A DNA stretch of 64,000 bases, from sequence record KJ019142.1; one strand, written 5' to 3'. Of this stretch, positions 3,272-48,644 are shown piece after piece. The number at the start of each line of letters is the position of its first letter. The first letter of the stretch is position 1. Below the pieces are notes generated by a model. That model was not told the DNA's origin, made no database searches, and saw only the letters and a list, made by a program, of their open reading frames with translations. Made by a program: the position numbers and the translations under genes.

Positions 3272-3988
3272 ATGGATGTATCCAATCCTGATAACTGGTA
3301 TATTGGTAGATTTTGTGAATCTAACTTCCTAGATCAAACAGCACTCTCCTCAGTGAGGTCATGGATTGATACTCAATCATGGGTAGATGGAGTTTTAACT
3401 TTGGACTACTCTAAAGATAAGGATCCATATCAACTGAAAAGAAATCAGGCAACGAGAAATATAATCCCACCCAGACTATTTTGGCCACATGTTGATAAGA
3501 ACGAAAAGTTCGCTCGGTTCACCTGTCCCCGATCAAGCACCGATCCAAACTGCACAAAAACATCTAAGGGTGAATACTACAAACCACACTTTGATGATGT
3601 AGTTAATGGGCACTTCTCAACTACGATCTTTATCAGTGATCCTGATGAATATGATGGTGGTGAGTTAGTTCTGTATATTGACGGGAAGGAAGTATTCTTC
3701 AAACCAAAAGCAGGTGAAGGTGTAACTTATGAGACTGGTATTGGTCATAGAGTCAATACAGTCACAAGGGGTGAGAGATTGGCATTTGTATTCTGGACAG
3801 ATTGTCGATGGGATGATATTGATGATTATCGTGATTGGCGTTATTATAACTATATGAAAGACTACCTAATGACAACTCCTTATGTTGATACCTTATATGA
3901 GTTTTGTAACGAACCCCATACTATATTCAAAGGGAAATCATATGATATTATGAGAAAGGTTATGAGGAAAGTTATTCCTAATGGTTGA
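3272..3988 (+). CDS. 2OG-Fe(II) oxygenase (PKHD type)
   Basis: YKPHFD...DEYDGGEL...HRVNTVTRGERL; start moved to ATG 3272 because the longer ORF overlaps tRNA-Asn. Confidence 0.88.
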   Translation: MDVSNPDNWYIGRFCESNFLDQTALSSVRSWIDTQSWVDGVLTLDYSKDKDPYQLKRNQATRNIIPPRLFWPHVDKNEKFARFTCPRSSTDPNCTKTSKGEYYKPHFDDVVNGHFSTTIFISDPDEYDGGELVLYIDGKEVFFKPKAGEGVTYETGIGHRVNTVTRGERLAFVFWTDCRWDDIDDYRDWRYYNYMKDYLMTTPYVDTLYEFCNEPHTIFKGKSYDIMRKVMRKVIPNG

Positions 3989-4514
3989 ATCATTTTACGG
4001 AGAAATACTCAACTCGGATGCTACTGGGCATCTGTATTCGTATGCCCAAAGTATTCAAGACTGGCAAACCATAAACCAAGACTACATGGGTAAGAAATAC
4101 CAGTCTGTTATGGCTCATAAAGTCCCTAGGGGAAATGAGATTGAGAAGTATGTTGTCAGAACTTTTCTCACATTCAATAAGTTATATTTCAACTACGATT
4201 TAGTAGGAACATTTGAAACACAGATTCTGAAATACAATGTGCATGATGGGTATGATTGGCACTGTGACTATGGTGTGAGTGAGAATCCCAATGCAGTTAG
4301 GAAACTGAGTATGATTATTCAACTCAGTGATATGTGGGACTACAACGGTGCAAATGTATTCCTAAGGGACTGGCACAACCGAGAACACATCCTAAGTAAG
4401 GAGTCTGGGTATGTTACCGTATTTGACTCTAGGTCCCCTCACAGGGTCTCTCCTCTAGCTATCGGAGAACGATACTCACTGGTAGCCTGGGCTCACGGTC
4501 CAGAGTGGAGATAA
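3981..4514 (+). CDS. 2OG-Fe(II) oxygenase
   Basis: YDWHCD...RKLSMIIQL...HRVSPLAIGERYSLVAW. Confidence 0.9.
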   Translation: MVESFYGEILNSDATGHLYSYAQSIQDWQTINQDYMGKKYQSVMAHKVPRGNEIEKYVVRTFLTFNKLYFNYDLVGTFETQILKYNVHDGYDWHCDYGVSENPNAVRKLSMIIQLSDMWDYNGANVFLRDWHNREHILSKESGYVTVFDSRSPHRVSPLAIGERYSLVAWAHGPEWR

Positions 4515-4539
4515 ATAAAATACAAAGAAATGGAAACAT

Positions 4540-4854
4540 ATGCTTTCTACACAATATCGTCTTCGCCTTGAGGCTATCTGCCGAAAGATTGCGAATAGTG
4601 AATCTGTGGATTTGAGTGACATGATCTGGGCAGACAAATTGGCAAAGAGCCATACTACTGCTAGAGACTGGTTACAGCAGGCAAGAAGACAATCAGCCCA
4701 TCAAATTGAAGAAGGTACCATAGATGATTTTATGAATAGGATGGGTTTAGGTGATCCCGATCCGTCCAATCATAAGAAGGGATTTGATAGTGCCGATGAT
4801 ATTAAGGACTGGTTTCAACAGGATAAGCCCAAAGACTGGAGACAAAGAGACTAA
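4540..4854 (+). CDS. conserved cyanophage hypothetical protein
   Basis: 104 aa ORF, MLSTQYRLRLE start; late-promoter-like ATAAATA upstream. Confidence 0.75.
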   Translation: MLSTQYRLRLEAICRKIANSESVDLSDMIWADKLAKSHTTARDWLQQARRQSAHQIEEGTIDDFMNRMGLGDPDPSNHKKGFDSADDIKDWFQQDKPKDWRQRD

Positions 4855-43481: not shown

Positions 43482-43523
43482 ACTCCTTAATTCCTTACAA
43501 TAGAACTATCACACTTTAAAACT

Positions 43524-43766
43524 ATGGCTTATACTTACGCATTTACTGATGCTGATAACAACAGCATCAAACGCACTGATGAAGACGGTAACGTTGCATT
43601 CGTTCCAGTCGCAGAAGGCAATCGTGACTACGCAGAATATCTATCCTCTGGTATCACTGCCGATGCATACGTAGCACCACCGGAACCAGAACCCCTTACT
43701 CCAGAAGAGAAACTAGCCAACTCTGGACTGACAGTTGATGAGCTAAAGAGTTTGTTAGATCTATAG
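43524..43766 (+). CDS. small protein downstream of fibre (possible assembly chaperone)
   Basis: AFVPVAEGNRDYAEYL...GLTVDELKSLL. Confidence 0.6.
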   Translation: MAYTYAFTDADNNSIKRTDEDGNVAFVPVAEGNRDYAEYLSSGITADAYVAPPEPEPLTPEEKLANSGLTVDELKSLLDL

Positions 43767-43870
43767 GTGTGACAGCCAGCAAACTGGCACAGGGGGTTGG
43801 CACCCTGGGGAATCTGTGTTATAATAAACACATAAATAAGATATGTAAAGTTCTTATTACAACACTTCCA

Positions 43871-43975
43871 TCTAACCGAGACCTACGGGGAAGTAAAATA
43901 CGTCTCTAATACCTACACCGGAGGGTGGTGTAGGAATAATACTATCGTCAGCTCCCCCTGGCACTACTTACCCTT
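43871..43975 (+). ncRNA. PhotoRC-II-like structured RNA in the psbA leader
   Basis: GAGAC/GTCTC and CCTACACC/GGTGTAGG stems directly upstream of psbA, the known location of this motif in cyanophages. Confidence 0.7.
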
Positions 43976-43983
43976 TTTACACA

Positions 43984-45063
43984 ATGGCTTCAACACTTAC
44001 ACGCCGTCAAGGCGCATCTATCTGGGATCAGTTTTGTTCCTGGGTCACATCAACCAACAATCGTCTTTACGTCGGTTGGTTCGGTGTTCTAATGATTCCT
44101 ACATTGTTAGCCGCAACTGTATGTTTCATTATCGCTTTCGTGGGTGCTCCCCCAGTGGACATCGACGGAATCCGTGAACCAGTAGCTGGTTCACTCATGT
44201 ATGGAAACAACATCATCTCTGGTGCAGTTGTTCCTAGTTCAAACGCAATCGGTCTACACTTCTACCCAATCTGGGAAGCAGCCACACTCGACGAATGGCT
44301 CTACAACGGTGGTCCTTTCCAACTAGTTGTCTTCCACTTCCTTATTGGTATCTACGCCTATATGGGACGTGAGTGGGAACTCTCTTATCGTTTAGGTATG
44401 AGACCTTGGATCTGTGTAGCATACTCTGCACCAGTTGCAGCAGCTTCAGCAGTATTCCTAGTCTATCCTTTCGGTCAAGGTTCATTCTCAGACGCGATGC
44501 CCTTGGGTATCTCTGGAACATTCAACTACATGTTGGTCTTCCAAGCAGAACATAACATCTTGATGCACCCCTTCCACATGTTGGGAGTCGCAGGTGTCTT
44601 CGGTGGTTCATTGTTCTCAGCGATGCATGGTTCACTTGTTACCTCTTCACTTGTCCGTGAGACAACTGAAACTGAGTCACAGAACTATGGTTACAAGTTC
44701 GGCCAAGAAGAAGAGACCTATAACATCGTGGCAGCCCATGGCTACTTCGGTCGTTTGATCTTCCAATACGCTTCATTCAACAACTCACGCTCACTCCACT
44801 TCTTCTTAGCCGCATGGCCAGTTGTGGGTATCTGGTTCACCGCACTTGGTGTTTCCACAATGGCATTCAACCTCAATGGTTTCAACTTCAACCAGTCTGT
44901 TATCGACGGACAAGGTAGAGTATTGAACACCTGGGCGGATGTTCTTAACAGAGCTGGTCTTGGGATGGAAGTAATGCATGAGAGAAATGCACACAACTTC
45001 CCACTAGATTTGGCAGCAGCTGAGTCCACACCAGTGGCTCTAATTGCACCATCTGTTGGTTGA
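43984..45063 (+). CDS. psbA: photosystem II D1 protein
   Basis: [27 protein letters not shown]; uninterrupted 359 aa. Confidence 0.99.
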
Positions 45064-45084
45064 TCACTCAACCTGTGGTATGAT

Positions 45085-45113
45085 AAAGGGGGACTTCGGT
45101 CCCCTTTCTTTTT
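45085..45113 (+). terminator. intrinsic terminator
   Basis: AAAGGGGGAC-TTCG-GTCCCCTTT plus T-rich tail. Confidence 0.85.
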
Positions 45114-45133
45114 CTTTTGTAATGTAAAGTTTT

Positions 45134-45364
45134 ATGTCTCACGATCTAATCGAATTGCTCACTTACTATGTGATCGGTGGTGCCCTTATCATAGGACCAC
45201 CCGCTATCTTTCTCATCATTGCTATGATGGCAGCACTCCAAAATACGAAAGGTCGCATGGTTGGATACAAAGATCACAAAACTTATGGTGATTCATCCAT
45301 CTACGATCCGGCACCAAAATTGCCAGTAGATCAAACAAAATTCTTCCTGGAACTTAACAACTGA
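45134..45364 (+). CDS. small membrane protein
   Basis: 76 aa, one TM segment. Confidence 0.7.
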   Translation: MSHDLIELLTYYVIGGALIIGPPAIFLIIAMMAALQNTKGRMVGYKDHKTYGDSSIYDPAPKLPVDQTKFFLELNN

Positions 45365-45375
45365 GGTAAACAAAA

Positions 45376-45423
45376 ATGACGACAAGTACACTTACAACAC
45401 CACAAAGGGGGTGTATTCGTTAG
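45376..45423 (+). pseudogene. psbD: 5' stub of a psbD gene (MTTSTLTTPQRG, then CIR-stop)
   Basis: RBS GAGGT; the first 12 codons match the usual cyanophage D2 N-terminus and break off within the Trp codon. Confidence 0.7.
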
Positions 45424-45783
45424 TCTGGAAGCAACTGACACAAATACCATAGGGGTATTGGCAAAACCCAAAAATATGTGTTATACTGGGTAGGGATAGG
45501 TAGAGTATTCAGGGGTGAAAAGACTACCTATACCCCCCAATAATACACAGCAATAATACACAGAGAATACTTATAATAAAACCCCTACGGGGTTTGCCTA
45601 CGGGCAACTGAAAGAGATATATGTATAGGGGCAACTGATATAACTGCTATGCCCGCTACGCCAACCTGAAAAACCACAAAGGTAGTATAACACCAGAAGT
45701 AGTTATTGGCAACTATCTAGAAACTATCTAGTTGCCGCAGGGGTTTTTATGCGTTATAATAATAATACCCTGAATACAAAACT

Positions 45784-45948
45784 ATGAGTATGATAAAACA
45801 GCGCCTGTATGAGGTAGATATTGCCCCAACAGAAGAAGATATGGCAGAGTATGAGTTATACTGCTACTACCAAGATATGGTAGAGCGGTATAATACTACC
45901 GCCCCAGAGAAGTTTTTAGAAGAGGCGTTTGGTGAAGAGGTAGAGTGA
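45784..45948 (+). CDS. small acidic protein (54 aa) in the cassette
   Basis: ATG after TATAAT at about 45755; TGA overlaps the GTG of the HNH gene. Confidence 0.55.
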   Translation: MSMIKQRLYEVDIAPTEEDMAEYELYCYYQDMVERYNTTAPEKFLEEAFGEEVE

Positions 45949-46577
45949 AGCAACTAATACAAAACCCAAACAACTATACAATAACCCCAGAGGGGGTTGT
46001 ATTATCTAACAAATACAAACGCCCCCTATCACTACAATATGATAGAGGGGGCAACCCCTTCTACCAGATAAAACGCCTAGGGGGTGGTAGTAGGCAACAA
46101 CTATACCAAAACAAACTACTACCCCAACACTACCCCTTCTACTGGATAAACCAGTTAGAAGAGGGTGAAGAGTGTAGGAATATAACTTATATCTACCAAC
46201 ACCCTATGCCCCCCTACAAATACTTTATAACCAACAGAGGTAGGGTTTGGAGCAACATATCTAATAGGTTTTTAGAAACCCAACACAACTATGGTAGGGG
46301 TGGATACTATGATAGAATAACCATAGATACACACTCTGTGAATACACACTGGTTGGTAGGTAGATACTTTTTAGAGAACTGGTATGCTGGTTGCTTTGTT
46401 TGCCATAGGTGTGAAACTCTACCCTACCCAAACAGAAACTACCCTACTAACCTGTGGGTAGGCAACAACAGCAGCAACCAGTTAGATAGTGAGAGCAAGC
46501 AGAGAACACTACACAGAAGAAAGAGAGTGAGTGAGTGTATGAGAGGCAACCAAAACTGGCGGGGCAAACACAAATAA
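45945..46577 (+). CDS. HNH homing endonuclease, NUMOD4/I-HmuI-like
   Basis: YFITNRGRVWS...GYY...HWLVGRYF...VCH...NYPTNLWVGNNSSN; N-terminal second YTITPEGVVLS repeat. Confidence 0.8.
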   Translation: MKQLIQNPNNYTITPEGVVLSNKYKRPLSLQYDRGGNPFYQIKRLGGGSRQQLYQNKLLPQHYPFYWINQLEEGEECRNITYIYQHPMPPYKYFITNRGRVWSNISNRFLETQHNYGRGGYYDRITIDTHSVNTHWLVGRYFLENWYAGCFVCHRCETLPYPNRNYPTNLWVGNNSSNQLDSESKQRTLHRRKRVSECMRGNQNWRGKHK

Positions 46578-46696
46578 CACACAAACTCTGTATAACTGCT
46601 CTACTACGCTTTCTAACCTAGCACTTTGTTGCTCTGGACTAACAGGGAGTTATGTGTTATAATATAAACATAAATACATATAACTTCACAAAAACT

Positions 46697-47755
46697 ATGA
46701 CTGCTTCACTTGCACCCCCAAAAAGCAACGGGGGTTGGTATGATATTTTAGAAGACTGGTTGCAGAAAGATAGGTTTGTCTTTATTGGCTGGTCTGGATT
46801 ACTACTTCTTCCCACTGCTTATCTTGCCATTGGCGGCTGGCTTACTGGCACAACTTTTGTCACGAGTTGGTACACCCATGGTCTTGCTTCTTCCTATCTT
46901 GAGGGTGCTAACTTTCTCACGGCGGCTGTCTCGACTCCTGCTGATGCTATGGGTCATTCTCTTCTTCTACTTTGGGGTCCTGAATCTCAGGGCGACTTCC
47001 AGCGGTGGCTCCAACTTGGAGGGCTTTGGTCCTTTGTTGCTCTCCACGGTGCCTTCGCTTTAATTGGATTCATGCTTCGTCAGTTTGAACTGTCACGACT
47101 CATTGGTATCCGTCCCTACAACGCTATTGCATTCAGTGGTCCTATCGCTGTATTTGTCAGTGTGTTTCTTCTATACCCACTAGGTCAATCTTCCTGGTTC
47201 TTTGCCCCCTCCTTTGGTGTGGCAGCAATCTTTAGATTCCTATTGTTTCTTCAGGGTTTCCACAACTGGACACTGAACCCCTTCCATATGATGGGAGTTG
47301 CTGGTATACTAGGTGGAGCACTACTATCTGCAATCCATGGCGTTACTGTTGAAAATACCCTATATGAAGATGGAGAACAGAATAACACCTTCACTGCGTT
47401 CGATTCCACCCAGGAGGAAGAGACCTATTCGATGGTTACTGCGAACCGCTTCTGGTCGCAAATCTTCGGGGTTGCGTTTAGTAATAAGCGTTGGCTTCAC
47501 TTCTTTATGTTGTTTGTTCCTGTCATGGGTCTTTGGGTCTCAAGTATTGGGATCATTGGGCTTGCTCTTAATCTTCGTGCTTATGATTTTGTGAGCCAAG
47601 AGATTAGAGCAGCAGAAGATCCTGAGTTTGAAACTTTCTACACAAAGAACATCCTTCTTAACGAAGGACTAAGAGCATGGATGGCACCTGTGGATCAACC
47701 ACATGAGTCATTTGTATTCCCAGAAGAAGTTCTACCTAGAGGTAACGCATTGTGA
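46697..47755 (+). CDS. psbD: photosystem II D2 protein
   Basis: [19 protein letters not shown]-like [27 protein letters not shown]; ATG 46697. Confidence 0.99.
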
Positions 47756-47997
47756 TTAACGCACTCTTCACTTTTATATTTGCTGCGGTGATGTGGGTGC
47801 AAGTCCCACAGTGGCAGGATGATTGGTCTAAGTGCGCAGTAGATGTACCTGATGTTCAATGTCATTGGTATATCACAGCACCCGATAGCACCATGGGTGA
47901 AGGATTTAGTTGGGCGAATGCCCCTTGGTTCAGTGCTGAAGGTCTCCTTGATATTGGAGAACTTCACAACACAGTTCAATCACTTCAGGAGGCATGA
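47752..47997 (+). CDS. conserved cyanophage hypothetical protein
   Basis: signal-like N-terminus, [13 protein letters not shown]. Confidence 0.7.
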
Positions 47998-48209
47998 TGA
48001 ATATATTATTTTTAGTATTATACTTCGTCTGTTTCTGTCTCATTGCAGGTGGTGCCGCAGCTATGATGTATGCAAACATACAATCTATCTGGAACACACC
48101 ACCCGCTCCACCTAAACCAATTCATCCTGAGGCACCTGTAGCAGGTGAAGAGGTTATGTATGTCGATCTAACAAGAGAAAAACTGGAAGATTTGTACCAT
48201 GAACATTGA
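47994..48209 (+). CDS. small membrane protein
   Basis: N-terminal TM, HPE...YVDL. Confidence 0.65.
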   Translation: MMNILFLVLYFVCFCLIAGGAAAMMYANIQSIWNTPPAPPKPIHPEAPVAGEEVMYVDLTREKLEDLYHEH

Positions 48210-48321
48210 ATACCTTTTAGGTTGGGTTGCTATTCTTGTTTTGTTTATAGCAACACAGAATACTGATGATGACGATGATCCAGAAGGTGGTATGATGGTT
48301 CCTTCCACTCAATCTACATAA
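48199..48321 (+). CDS. small membrane peptide with acidic tail (40 aa)
   Basis: TM then DDDDDPEGGMM; read by eye. Confidence 0.55.
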   Translation: MNIEYLLGWVAILVLFIATQNTDDDDDPEGGMMVPSTQST

Positions 48322-48330
48322 CAAAACTAC

Positions 48331-48359
48331 AAGGGGATTGCTAACAATCCTCTTTTTTT
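48331..48359 (+). terminator. intrinsic terminator
   Basis: AGGGGATTG/CAATCCTCT plus T run. Confidence 0.75.
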
Positions 48360-48443
48360 GTATCGTTATTTTGTTTGATTGTTATATATTGTGTGTATTC
48401 TCACACAAACCATATACATAGAGTGTAGAACAAGAGGAGTATT

Positions 48444-48644
48444 ATGTTATCACATAATCTTATTTCGCATAACCAATTAGAAGGTTGGCGAGAATCTTTT
48501 CAGAAGATAGATAAATCTACCAATAGAACAACAGACGAACTAAACCTAATTAATGATTACTATGATTGCTTAATAGAGTGTGATGATAACCAATCAGCAT
48601 GTAAGCGTATCTGTAAACATGTATTGACATCTCCACCAATTTAA
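48444..48644 (+). CDS. small Cys-containing hypothetical protein
   Basis: DYYDCLIECDDNQSACKRIC. Confidence 0.7.
   Translation: MLSHNLISHNQLEGWRESFQKIDKSTNRTTDELNLINDYYDCLIECDDNQSACKRICKHVLTSPPI

Follow-up and report, generated by a model that had tools for sequence, protein, structure and literature searches.

To our knowledge, psbA is so far the only cyanophage gene that has been linked with homing endonucleases, through F-CphI and the psbA intron. In phage T4, free-standing endonucleases such as SegF, SegG and MobE carry out intronless homing with co-conversion of flanking markers, and one-sided homing with microhomologous or illegitimate junctions provides a further precedent (PMC2988022). 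Endonuclease insertion in genes is also known, as in Aeh1 nrdA, which is split by mobE, and in T4 gene 39/60, which is split by mobA (PMC2988022), and in fungal mitochondria free-standing homing endonuclease genes (HEGs) occur with partial duplications of atp6, atp9 or cox1 (PMC7487136). Here we describe an HNH endonuclease cassette at the 5' end of psbD, which encodes D2, in Synechococcus phage ACG-2014f isolate Syn7803C11 (C11; KJ019142.1). The stretch analysed, hereafter the window, comprises 64,000 nucleotides, and a window position equals the record position minus 124000. As we read it, the cassette would consist of a promoter-like site P1 with a hairpin RNA, P2 with a 54-aa open reading frame (ORF) and an I-HmuI-type HNH gene, and P3, and it would sit immediately 5' of psbD. 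We consider it probable that a free-standing homing endonuclease living just 5' of psbD entered ACG-2014f by double-strand-break repair. The genes, gene fragments and junction segments described below lie on the plus strand, as do the three promoter-like sites, which are motif matches from a sigma70-type scan.

Megablast against GenBank phages found the complete stub-cassette-psbD structure in nine records, representing eight isolates, and matched only the flanks in about 32 other ACG-2014f isolates; carriers are thus eight of about 40 sequenced isolates. Alignment with cassette-free relatives, which the preliminary description of this DNA had proposed as a check, mapped the junctions against isolate US30 (KJ019093). 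This genome and the window differ at 0 of 1391 nt on the left and 0 of 1700 nt on the right, and 31 nt of the US30 gene (psbD nt 39-69) are swapped in the window for 1,355 nt (45414-46768). The psbD of US30 is intact and runs uninterrupted from the ATG that heads the stub in the window, reading ATGACG...CAAAGGGGGTG|GTTCGATGTCCTGGATGACTGGGTTAAACGC|GATAGG, where GTTCGATGTCCTGGATGACTGGGTTAAACGC is the 31 replaced nt. The identity of the flanks and the intact psbD starting at the stub's ATG indicate that the stub is the decapitated native start and that the new head is foreign. The same stub and the MTASLAPP start in HNH-less relatives would have spoken against such an insertion, and neither was present in these relatives.

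The stub, recognised by its identity to sibling psbD starts, holds the native ATG and the first 38 nt of the gene (45376..45413), and together with all upstream sequence it is 100% identical to the psbD start of the cassette-free siblings. Its ATG at 45376 is preceded by GAGGTAAACAAAAATG, a ribosome-binding site (GAGG), and it reads MTTSTLTTPQRG followed by TG, so that the usual psbD start reported here at the outset is confirmed. After this TG the frame continues TGT ATT CGT TAG and stops at 45421-45423, giving an ORF (45376-45423) with a 15-aa product in which the first 13 native codons are left. The gene had been said to collapse at this point into unrelated sequence; the frame does stop, but the nucleotides that follow are not wholly unrelated, being psbD-like to judge from isolate US37. 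The junction filler, delimited by comparison among isolates, is 36 nt long (45414..45449) and opens with a psbD-like patch of 18 nt (45414-45431) that is degenerate and frameshifted. The sequence in seven carriers is ...GGGGGTG|TATTCGTTAGTCTGGAAG CAACTGACAC..., whereas US37 reads ...GGGGGTG GTATGATATTTTGGAAG|CAACTGACAC..., with a stub that is 17 nt longer and stays in-frame psbD (...TGGTATGATATTTTGGAAG), after which the common cassette sequence CAACTGAC starts. The longer in-frame stub of US37 places the left junction between 45413 and 45431. The two stub versions agree at 11 of 18 positions; either the original join lay after psbD nt 55 (GGAAG) and two diverged patches of the distal stub exist, or joining took place twice, in separate events. 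About 18 nt of filler follow (CAACTGAC...CCA), with an 8-nt indel in three isolates, and the conserved module begins with TAGGGGTATTGGCAAAACC at 45450. Most likely the stub is the scar of one-sided (illegitimate) repair rather than a designed strategy. The junction sequence GAAGCAACTGACACAAATACCA resembles the start of the HNH gene (18/22), a likeness that is not separable from chance in compositionally biased DNA and that we did not use.

A stub and a psbD body separated by an HNH gene could also represent a degenerate group I or II intron with an HNH ORF, in which splicing would join the two parts. Joining ...GGGGGTG (45413) to GTATGAT (46738) would be in frame and would yield a US17-type protein, and intron-encoded HNH enzymes exist, for example I-HmuI. 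However, a search of the 5 kb at 43500-48500 against Rfam (E<=1) found no group I or II intron and returned only PhotoRC-II. A group I intron follows a U, the last base of the 5' exon, and itself has G as its last base. The only in-frame join departs from this rule, since it would leave G at the end of the 5' exon or T at the end of the intron. Moreover, the segment upstream of the putative 3' splice site is homologous to the psbD start and has an ATG, an ACAAAAA leader and a promoter of its own, the US37 stub would require a different splice site, and the stub ORF stops 8 nt past the junction. As neither Rfam nor manual splice-site reasoning gave an intron or a canonical in-frame join of stub and body, splicing was rejected, in agreement with the preliminary description, and we regard an intron as highly improbable.

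The full-length psbD (46697..47755; 352 aa) begins about 1.3 kb downstream of the stub, and its product matches Photo_RC over residues 28-317 (E 6e-72). An intact gene with a different N-terminus had been expected at this distance, and the coordinates and motifs given earlier were right within one base, the psbD ATG being at 46697 and not at 46698. Comparison with the siblings divides the gene into a foreign head of codons 1-24 (46697..46768), in which 46768 is the last base that differs from US30, and a resident body (46769..47755) that is identical to US30 throughout the 1700 nt compared on this side. In the replaced tract the head differs from the naive allele at 14/31 positions, and head and native gene have a common leader, ACAAAAA..ATGAC. 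The promoter motifs described before the intact gene are present as motif matches: P3 (46635-46663), TGGACT-17-TATAAT with an upstream TG and its -10 box at 46658-46663, includes TGTTATAAT (46655-46663), and it is followed by a T4-late-like CATAAATA (46669-46676). The P3 region is conserved in the metagenomic contigs L011 and L024. GenBank places the D2 start at 46652 (MCYNIN...), a start that is not in the US37 and C25 annotations. It is probably wrong, with the true start at 46697, because the added 46652-46696 spans the P3 -10 box. Such a misplaced start would fit an assembly or annotation artefact, but the structure is found in eight independently assembled isolates with differences at the level of single-nucleotide polymorphisms, and the cassette and head are found in four independent metagenome assemblies, so that an artefact is scarcely credible. 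The 12-13 residues of the stub are duplicated by the new head and the downstream psbD is complete, and this is hence not a gene in pieces. The gene had also been called essential; this did not hold, since psbD is an auxiliary gene that is missing in 4/16 surveyed cyanomyoviruses (PMC3037559).

The gene between the stub and psbD (45945..46577) has a GTG start and encodes 210 aa. The protein alone has no Pfam or NCBIfam match, and a single-sequence PDB search returned only a LIM match, which was discarded as spurious. It matches PHROG 959 and 59, both HNH families (E 1.5e-6 and 1e-4). An exhaustive HMMER search found 123 relatives, and a profile built from 61 of these matched PDB 1U3E (I-HmuI) at E 1.3e-15, with ilHkdE...NLwvG..dN of the profile aligned to DHKDGN...NL...INVEN of 1U3E. 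NUMOD4 was found in 42 of the 61 relatives, and H154, N169 and N178 (catalytic His and metal-binding Asn) are invariant or nearly so across them. The AlphaFold2 (AF2) model has a pLDDT of 90.5, and its top and only significant PDB neighbour in Foldseek is 1u3e_M (E 5.5e-5, prob 1.0, 116 columns). The protein is accordingly predicted to be an I-HmuI-like NUMOD4/HNH endonuclease, with the beta-beta-alpha-metal HNH motif and the NUMOD4 fold, which bears out the HNH gene proposed at this place and, with the I-HmuI type in place of the Endo VII type and no intron, its distinctness from the F-CphI and intron cases near psbA. The gene is a putative free-standing HEG, a separate ORF with its own start and its own P2 outside any intron or intein. 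It is intact in 8/8 carriers, and its dN/dS against the metagenomic copies (0.24-0.31) points to purifying selection on the nuclease. A 33%-identical HNH relative stands free between regA (translation repressor) and hsp20 in S-H34 (MT162467, L023; 2465-2980), indicating that the HNH family occupies other intergenic sites in cyanomyoviruses.

The cassette-free siblings carry four psbD 5' alleles. Type A (US30) is the commonest, has 0/14 of the head's differences and matches the canonical phage D2 start; type B occurs in US17 and C34, type C in US4 and C90, and type D in C16, where MTTSTL is followed by APPKSNGG. All of them converge by codon ~29, and the allele diversity at the junction is confined to ~70 nt with identical flanks. 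Among the carriers, in which psbD codons 1-24 are donor-type, the right boundary also varies (GTC vs ATC at codon 28). Types B-D look like partial conversions toward the donor-type head, or like stub-head deletions, and since they are unlike the present head at synonymous sites, they would come from other donor variants. With hybrid or related versions of the head in the cassette-free C16, US17, C34, US4 and C90, the earlier idea of a recoded replacement 5' end has to be given up, as the head is an ordinary diverged psbD allele. The wider claim, that the element invades the gene without splicing by means of a replacement head and promoters, stands as regards the missing intron, the foreign head and the promoter-like site, but the head is a donor allele. 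The simplest reading of this comparison would be that the gene flanking the cassette in the donor was co-converted, in the manner of intronless homing. The allele hot spot would be the expected outcome of repeated break-and-repair at this place, short of proof.

The hybrid alleles also bear on the reverse order of events, in which the cassette arrangement is older and the cassette-free genomes arose from stub-head recombination that deleted the cassette. The stub forms a direct repeat with the head (71% over 38 nt), and MTTSTL|APPKSNGG of C16 is the exact product of a crossover at the common CACTT. However, type A, with its canonical start and none of the 14 differences of the head, is not derivable by stub-head deletion, and the flanks and downstream codons of C16 are unlike those of all sequenced carriers. 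Deletion between stub and head may explain only some of the hybrid alleles, and we consider an older cassette arrangement improbable.

Presence and absence of the cassette segregate among close relatives, with eight carriers against about 32 cassette-free isolates and identical flanks in C11 and US30. The carriers lie on at least three backbones, namely the C11 group of six, C25 and US37. Within this group of six isolates, the flanks differ by 0-3 nt and the cassettes by 6-49 nt, and the cassette differences fall in tight patches, such as 19 changes in 45793-45850 and a 9-nt deletion plus four changes at the 3' end of the HNH gene. Two of the patches match a metagenomic lineage, one (C14/US26) in the P1 region and the other (US13/C29) at the 3' end of the HNH gene. 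Such clustered patches are, as far as sequence comparison can tell, the signature of recombination among diverged cassette alleles.

Diverged copies were sought in a 5.8-billion-protein search, a metagenome scan and exact look-ups, which led to short contigs of 0.8-1.2 kb. The metagenomic HNH proteins are 76-79% identical to that of the window, the 5.8-billion-protein search contributing one 76% relative on an 861-bp contig. In L011 and L024 the order is P2, small ORF, HNH and P3, followed by an APPKSNGG-type psbD head (ATG ACT TCT TCT TTG GCA CCC CCA AAA AGC AAC GGG GGT TGG TAT GAT...), and the linkage HNH-P3-APPKSNGG is kept where the HNH protein is only 79% identical. The same order and head in these contigs indicate that the nuclease and the psbD head type have remained linked through substantial divergence. 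In L024 (ERZ1283817 k141_212300) the module follows directly after the stop of a Syn7803C11_17 homologue (89% aa, 85% nt) and there is no psbD stub. The search of phages and metagenomes for a stub with HNH and psbD, which had been suggested earlier, thus returned ACG-2014f (nine records), but L024 has the HNH-head unit without the stub. Gene 17 of ACG-2014f lies ~150 kb from psbD and is followed by a glycosyltransferase (L024 1-110 vs L028 925-1020, KJ019142 17.2 kb). The context in L024 means either that the genome of that lineage is ordered differently or that the unit landed ectopically, with the psbD head as cargo; as a check on ectopic cutting, the psbD target region was compared with the L024 gene-17 junction, and the similarity was within shuffled expectation. 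With homology to ACG-2014f on the psbD side only, L024 would be the kind of donor that a one-sided model requires. IMG/VR returned only the same phage, PPK(S/T)NGGWYD is encoded by no bacterial genome searched, and a search with the D2 N-terminal region gave no full-length APPKSNGG protein, so that the APPKSNGG-type head was not found in sequenced phages outside ACG-2014f, IMG/VR contigs or bacterial genomes.

In the homing event that we envisage, the HNH enzyme would attack the naive psbD allele at or close to nt 39-69, by a cut or a nick, and the break would be repaired off a cassette-bearing genome, the right end by psbD homology. Repair copying would begin on the psbD side and take in the head and P3, then HNH and the remaining cassette, and the donor head and promoter would be co-converted. 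At the first entry into ACG-2014f the donor would have had no left homology, as with a copy behind a gene-17 homologue, so that the left end would have been joined illegitimately, leaving the stub and ~36 nt of filler. Later, the stub and orf76 (45134..45364; ORF list, phrog_961), which lies directly 5' of psbD in cassette-free siblings, would have formed a left homology arm, and the cassette would have spread among backbones and recombined with other variants. The 14/31 differences of the donor-type head would make carriers immune to the nuclease, and it is plausible that the carrier head destroys the cut site. It is likewise plausible that the new P3 rewires psbD expression, with psbD now probably transcribed from P3 and not by read-through from orf76.

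An alternative to homing is passive mosaicism, in which ordinary illegitimate or homologous recombination of co-infecting cyanophages brought in the cassette and head, and the HNH enzyme has its target elsewhere, serves some other purpose as a nickase or has no activity on the psbD site. Recombination of cyanophage photosystem genes is known (PMC3037559). The psbA-psbD interval has unrelated inserts in other phages, such as the restriction enzyme and methylase of S-RIM32, in KJ019101 the left part of the module follows gp32 and is accompanied by another type of nuclease, and we infer cleavage of psbD by the HNH enzyme only from position and polymorphism. However, the insert boundary lies inside the gene that adjoins the nuclease, the junction coincides with the cluster of diverged alleles within ~70 nt between identical flanks, the HNH-psbD-head linkage persists across lineages with HNH proteins only 79% identical, and the nuclease, intact in all copies, is under purifying selection. 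Taken as a whole, passive mosaicism seems unlikely to us.

Several further points weigh against homing as we describe it. I-HmuI itself is a nickase, and many phage HNH genes serve other roles. The two stub versions are not cleanly accounted for; they may stem from two events, or from a patch that was converted later. Several synonymous sites distinguish the hybrid cassette-free alleles from the present head, and these alleles do not descend directly from the sequenced carriers. In addition, the donor arrangement is known only from contigs of ~1 kb, in which psbD beyond the head is not covered (L024, L011) and which would not fix the ancestral context of the cassette.

A bolder interpretation, which we put forward tentatively and with some doubt, is that the whole is a self-contained gene-head replacement element made up of a promoter with hairpin RNA, an acidic protein, the HNH enzyme, a promoter and a nuclease-resistant psbD 5' end. 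If this is true, such an element travels as one piece and can land behind unrelated genes, as in L024; it invades coding sequence without an intron or intein by supplying a substitute start for the gene that it decapitates; and the hairpin and 54-aa protein are accessories of a wider family of phage homing modules, found also beside a GIY-YIG-like gene in KJ019101.

The left end of the conserved module (45450..45487), shared with L024 and KJ019101, includes P1 (45458-45487), a sigma70-like TTGGCA-18-TATACT with TG, and in both of these records the end TAGGGG..TTGGCAAAA stands right after the stop codons of unrelated genes. P1 is followed by the hairpin RNA element with the loop UUCAGGGGUGAA (45493..45535, plus strand; fold -28.8 kcal/mol, z -2.0), whose stem pairing is kept despite changes on both sides in the L013 and L020 copies, and by a second small hairpin (45579-45595). 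The promoter (TGTGTTATACT) and the hairpin with its loop recur outside the cassette, the counterparts of window 45458-45537 being L013 (KJ019086) 2503-2620, L020 60-150 and L029 (KJ019101) 935-1030. A 90%-identical copy, followed by an intrinsic terminator, lies at ~158.7 kb in many ACG-2014f genomes, not including that of the window, and stem changes in these copies retain pairing (ATAGG/CCTAT to ATTGG/CCAAT). The element has no Rfam family and resembles either a small RNA gene or a regulatory leader belonging to homing modules.

P2 (45732..45760), a sigma70-like TTGCCG-17-TATAAT found by the same scan and conserved in L010, L011 and L024, stands 5' of the small ORF and HNH. The acidic 54-aa ORF (45784..45948; ORF list, phrog_10005) has a stop that overlaps the HNH start codon, homologues 5' of HNH genes in L010, L011, L020 and L021, and a dN/dS of 0.24-0.29 against the metagenomic copies. 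Copies with the phrog_10005 motif TDMEEYELYCYY are at L010 126-275, L011 92-241, L020 198-374, L021 412-567 and L029 1096-1251, and in distant metagenomic relatives the protein is encoded directly 5' of NUMOD4/HNH genes. In KJ019101 the phrog_10005 ORF follows gp32, beside a convergent 210-aa ORF with GIY-YIG/NUMOD3-like motifs as judged by eye. The phrog_10005 protein may be a conserved accessory of phage homing modules. The plus strand of the cassette is A-rich, unlike psbA and psbD. A search of the non-coding left part of the cassette (370 nt) for decayed remains of HNH, the small ORF or psbD gave nothing significant. The sequence GCAACTGA/GCAACTA occurs four times in the left part of the cassette and at the HNH start (45431-45450, 45604-45619, 45631-45650, 45950-45969), and an inverted pair GGCAACTATCTAG/CTATCTAGTTGCC just 5' of P2 makes up the palindrome at 45708-45736. 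The repeats and the inverted pair may serve to bind a protein, or they may have arisen by chance in this biased sequence.

Upstream of the cassette, psbA (D1; 43984..45063; ORF list and GenBank annotation) is followed by an intrinsic-terminator-like hairpin at 45086-45107, detected by a terminator scan. A PhotoRC-II RNA motif (43852..43947, plus strand; Rfam RF01717, 69.4 bits, E 5.8e-11) lies 5' of psbA and outside the cassette; this is a known motif at its expected place, with a strong sigma70-like promoter ahead of it (43797-43825). In S-RIM32 (KU594606, L014), a restriction enzyme/methylase pair and thioredoxin lie between psbA and psbD. A psbD-like N-terminus in the same phage was considered and set aside as unrelated to the cassette, being the front of the phage's own psbD, whose coding sequence is annotated short. 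Within 3501-4562 this coding sequence is annotated with only 684 nt; ~380 nt upstream, the D2-like N-terminus has no annotation, pointing to a frameshift, a pseudogene or a sequencing error.

Homing into psbD would extend homing-endonuclease pressure to a second photosystem gene, with a different enzyme family, and the solution, a swapped gene start and a new promoter instead of splicing, could alter the timing or amount of phage D2. It could also explain why the alleles of a metabolic gene that came from the host vary so locally at the 5' end. The ACG-2014f collection, with near-isogenic wild isolates that have or lack the cassette and with hybrid psbD alleles, is a natural experiment that would allow homing, co-conversion and one-sided illegitimate repair to be quantified beyond T4, among the phages of a marine population. 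Our literature search, which did not cover all journals, found no paper on a psbD-associated homing endonuclease or on such an arrangement.

Like F-CphI and the S-PM2 psbA intron, the locus combines a cyanomyovirus photosystem II gene with a free-standing homing endonuclease encoded alongside (PMC6083498). However, F-CphI has an Endo VII-type motif, is encoded downstream of psbA and cuts at the intron insertion site (PMC6083498), whereas the enzyme described here is I-HmuI-like (NUMOD4/HNH) and encoded upstream of psbD, with no intron and with a gene stub left behind. The closest solved relative is I-HmuI of Bacillus phage SPO1 (1U3E), with an N-terminal beta-sheet NUMOD4 followed by HNH and with conserved His and Asn. 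I-HmuI is intron-encoded and nicks one strand, whereas the window gene is free-standing, and the match to 1U3E spans only residues ~72-187, the first ~70 residues and the basic tail having no solved counterpart. As in nrdA/mobE and gene 39/60/mobA, a nuclease gene lies within a coding region without an intron or intein and the host gene is still functional; there, however, the two halves are both required and come together again as subunits, whereas the window has a redundant 13-codon remnant and a complete downstream gene. As with the fungal HEGs, the insertion comes with a partial, pseudogenised copy of the gene next to it, but the fungal cases are organellar and of the LAGLIDADG or GIY-YIG type, and a 5' head with a bacterial-type promoter is not described there.

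The engineered laboratory system of T4 one-sided homing likewise has homology on a single side and a non-homologous or microhomologous junction on the other, which fits the clean right and filler-containing left junctions of the cassette; that system uses an intron, whereas here a free-standing HNH cassette would have entered a wild population by a natural event and become fixed in it. With T4 SegF, SegG and MobE the locus shares a free-standing nuclease with its own promoter beside its presumed target gene, presence or absence among close relatives and replacement of the neighbour's flanking markers by those of the donor. Unlike in these systems, the coding region of the target contains the boundary, the 5' fragment is duplicated and persists as a stub, the co-converted piece includes a promoter and start codon so that the gene is re-headed, and cleavage is presumed. 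Thus, a free-standing HEG with intronless homing is already known as a kind of element, and what is new is an insertion in 5' coding sequence that is rescued by a co-transferred promoter and head, leaves a residual stub and segregates in wild, near-isogenic phages.

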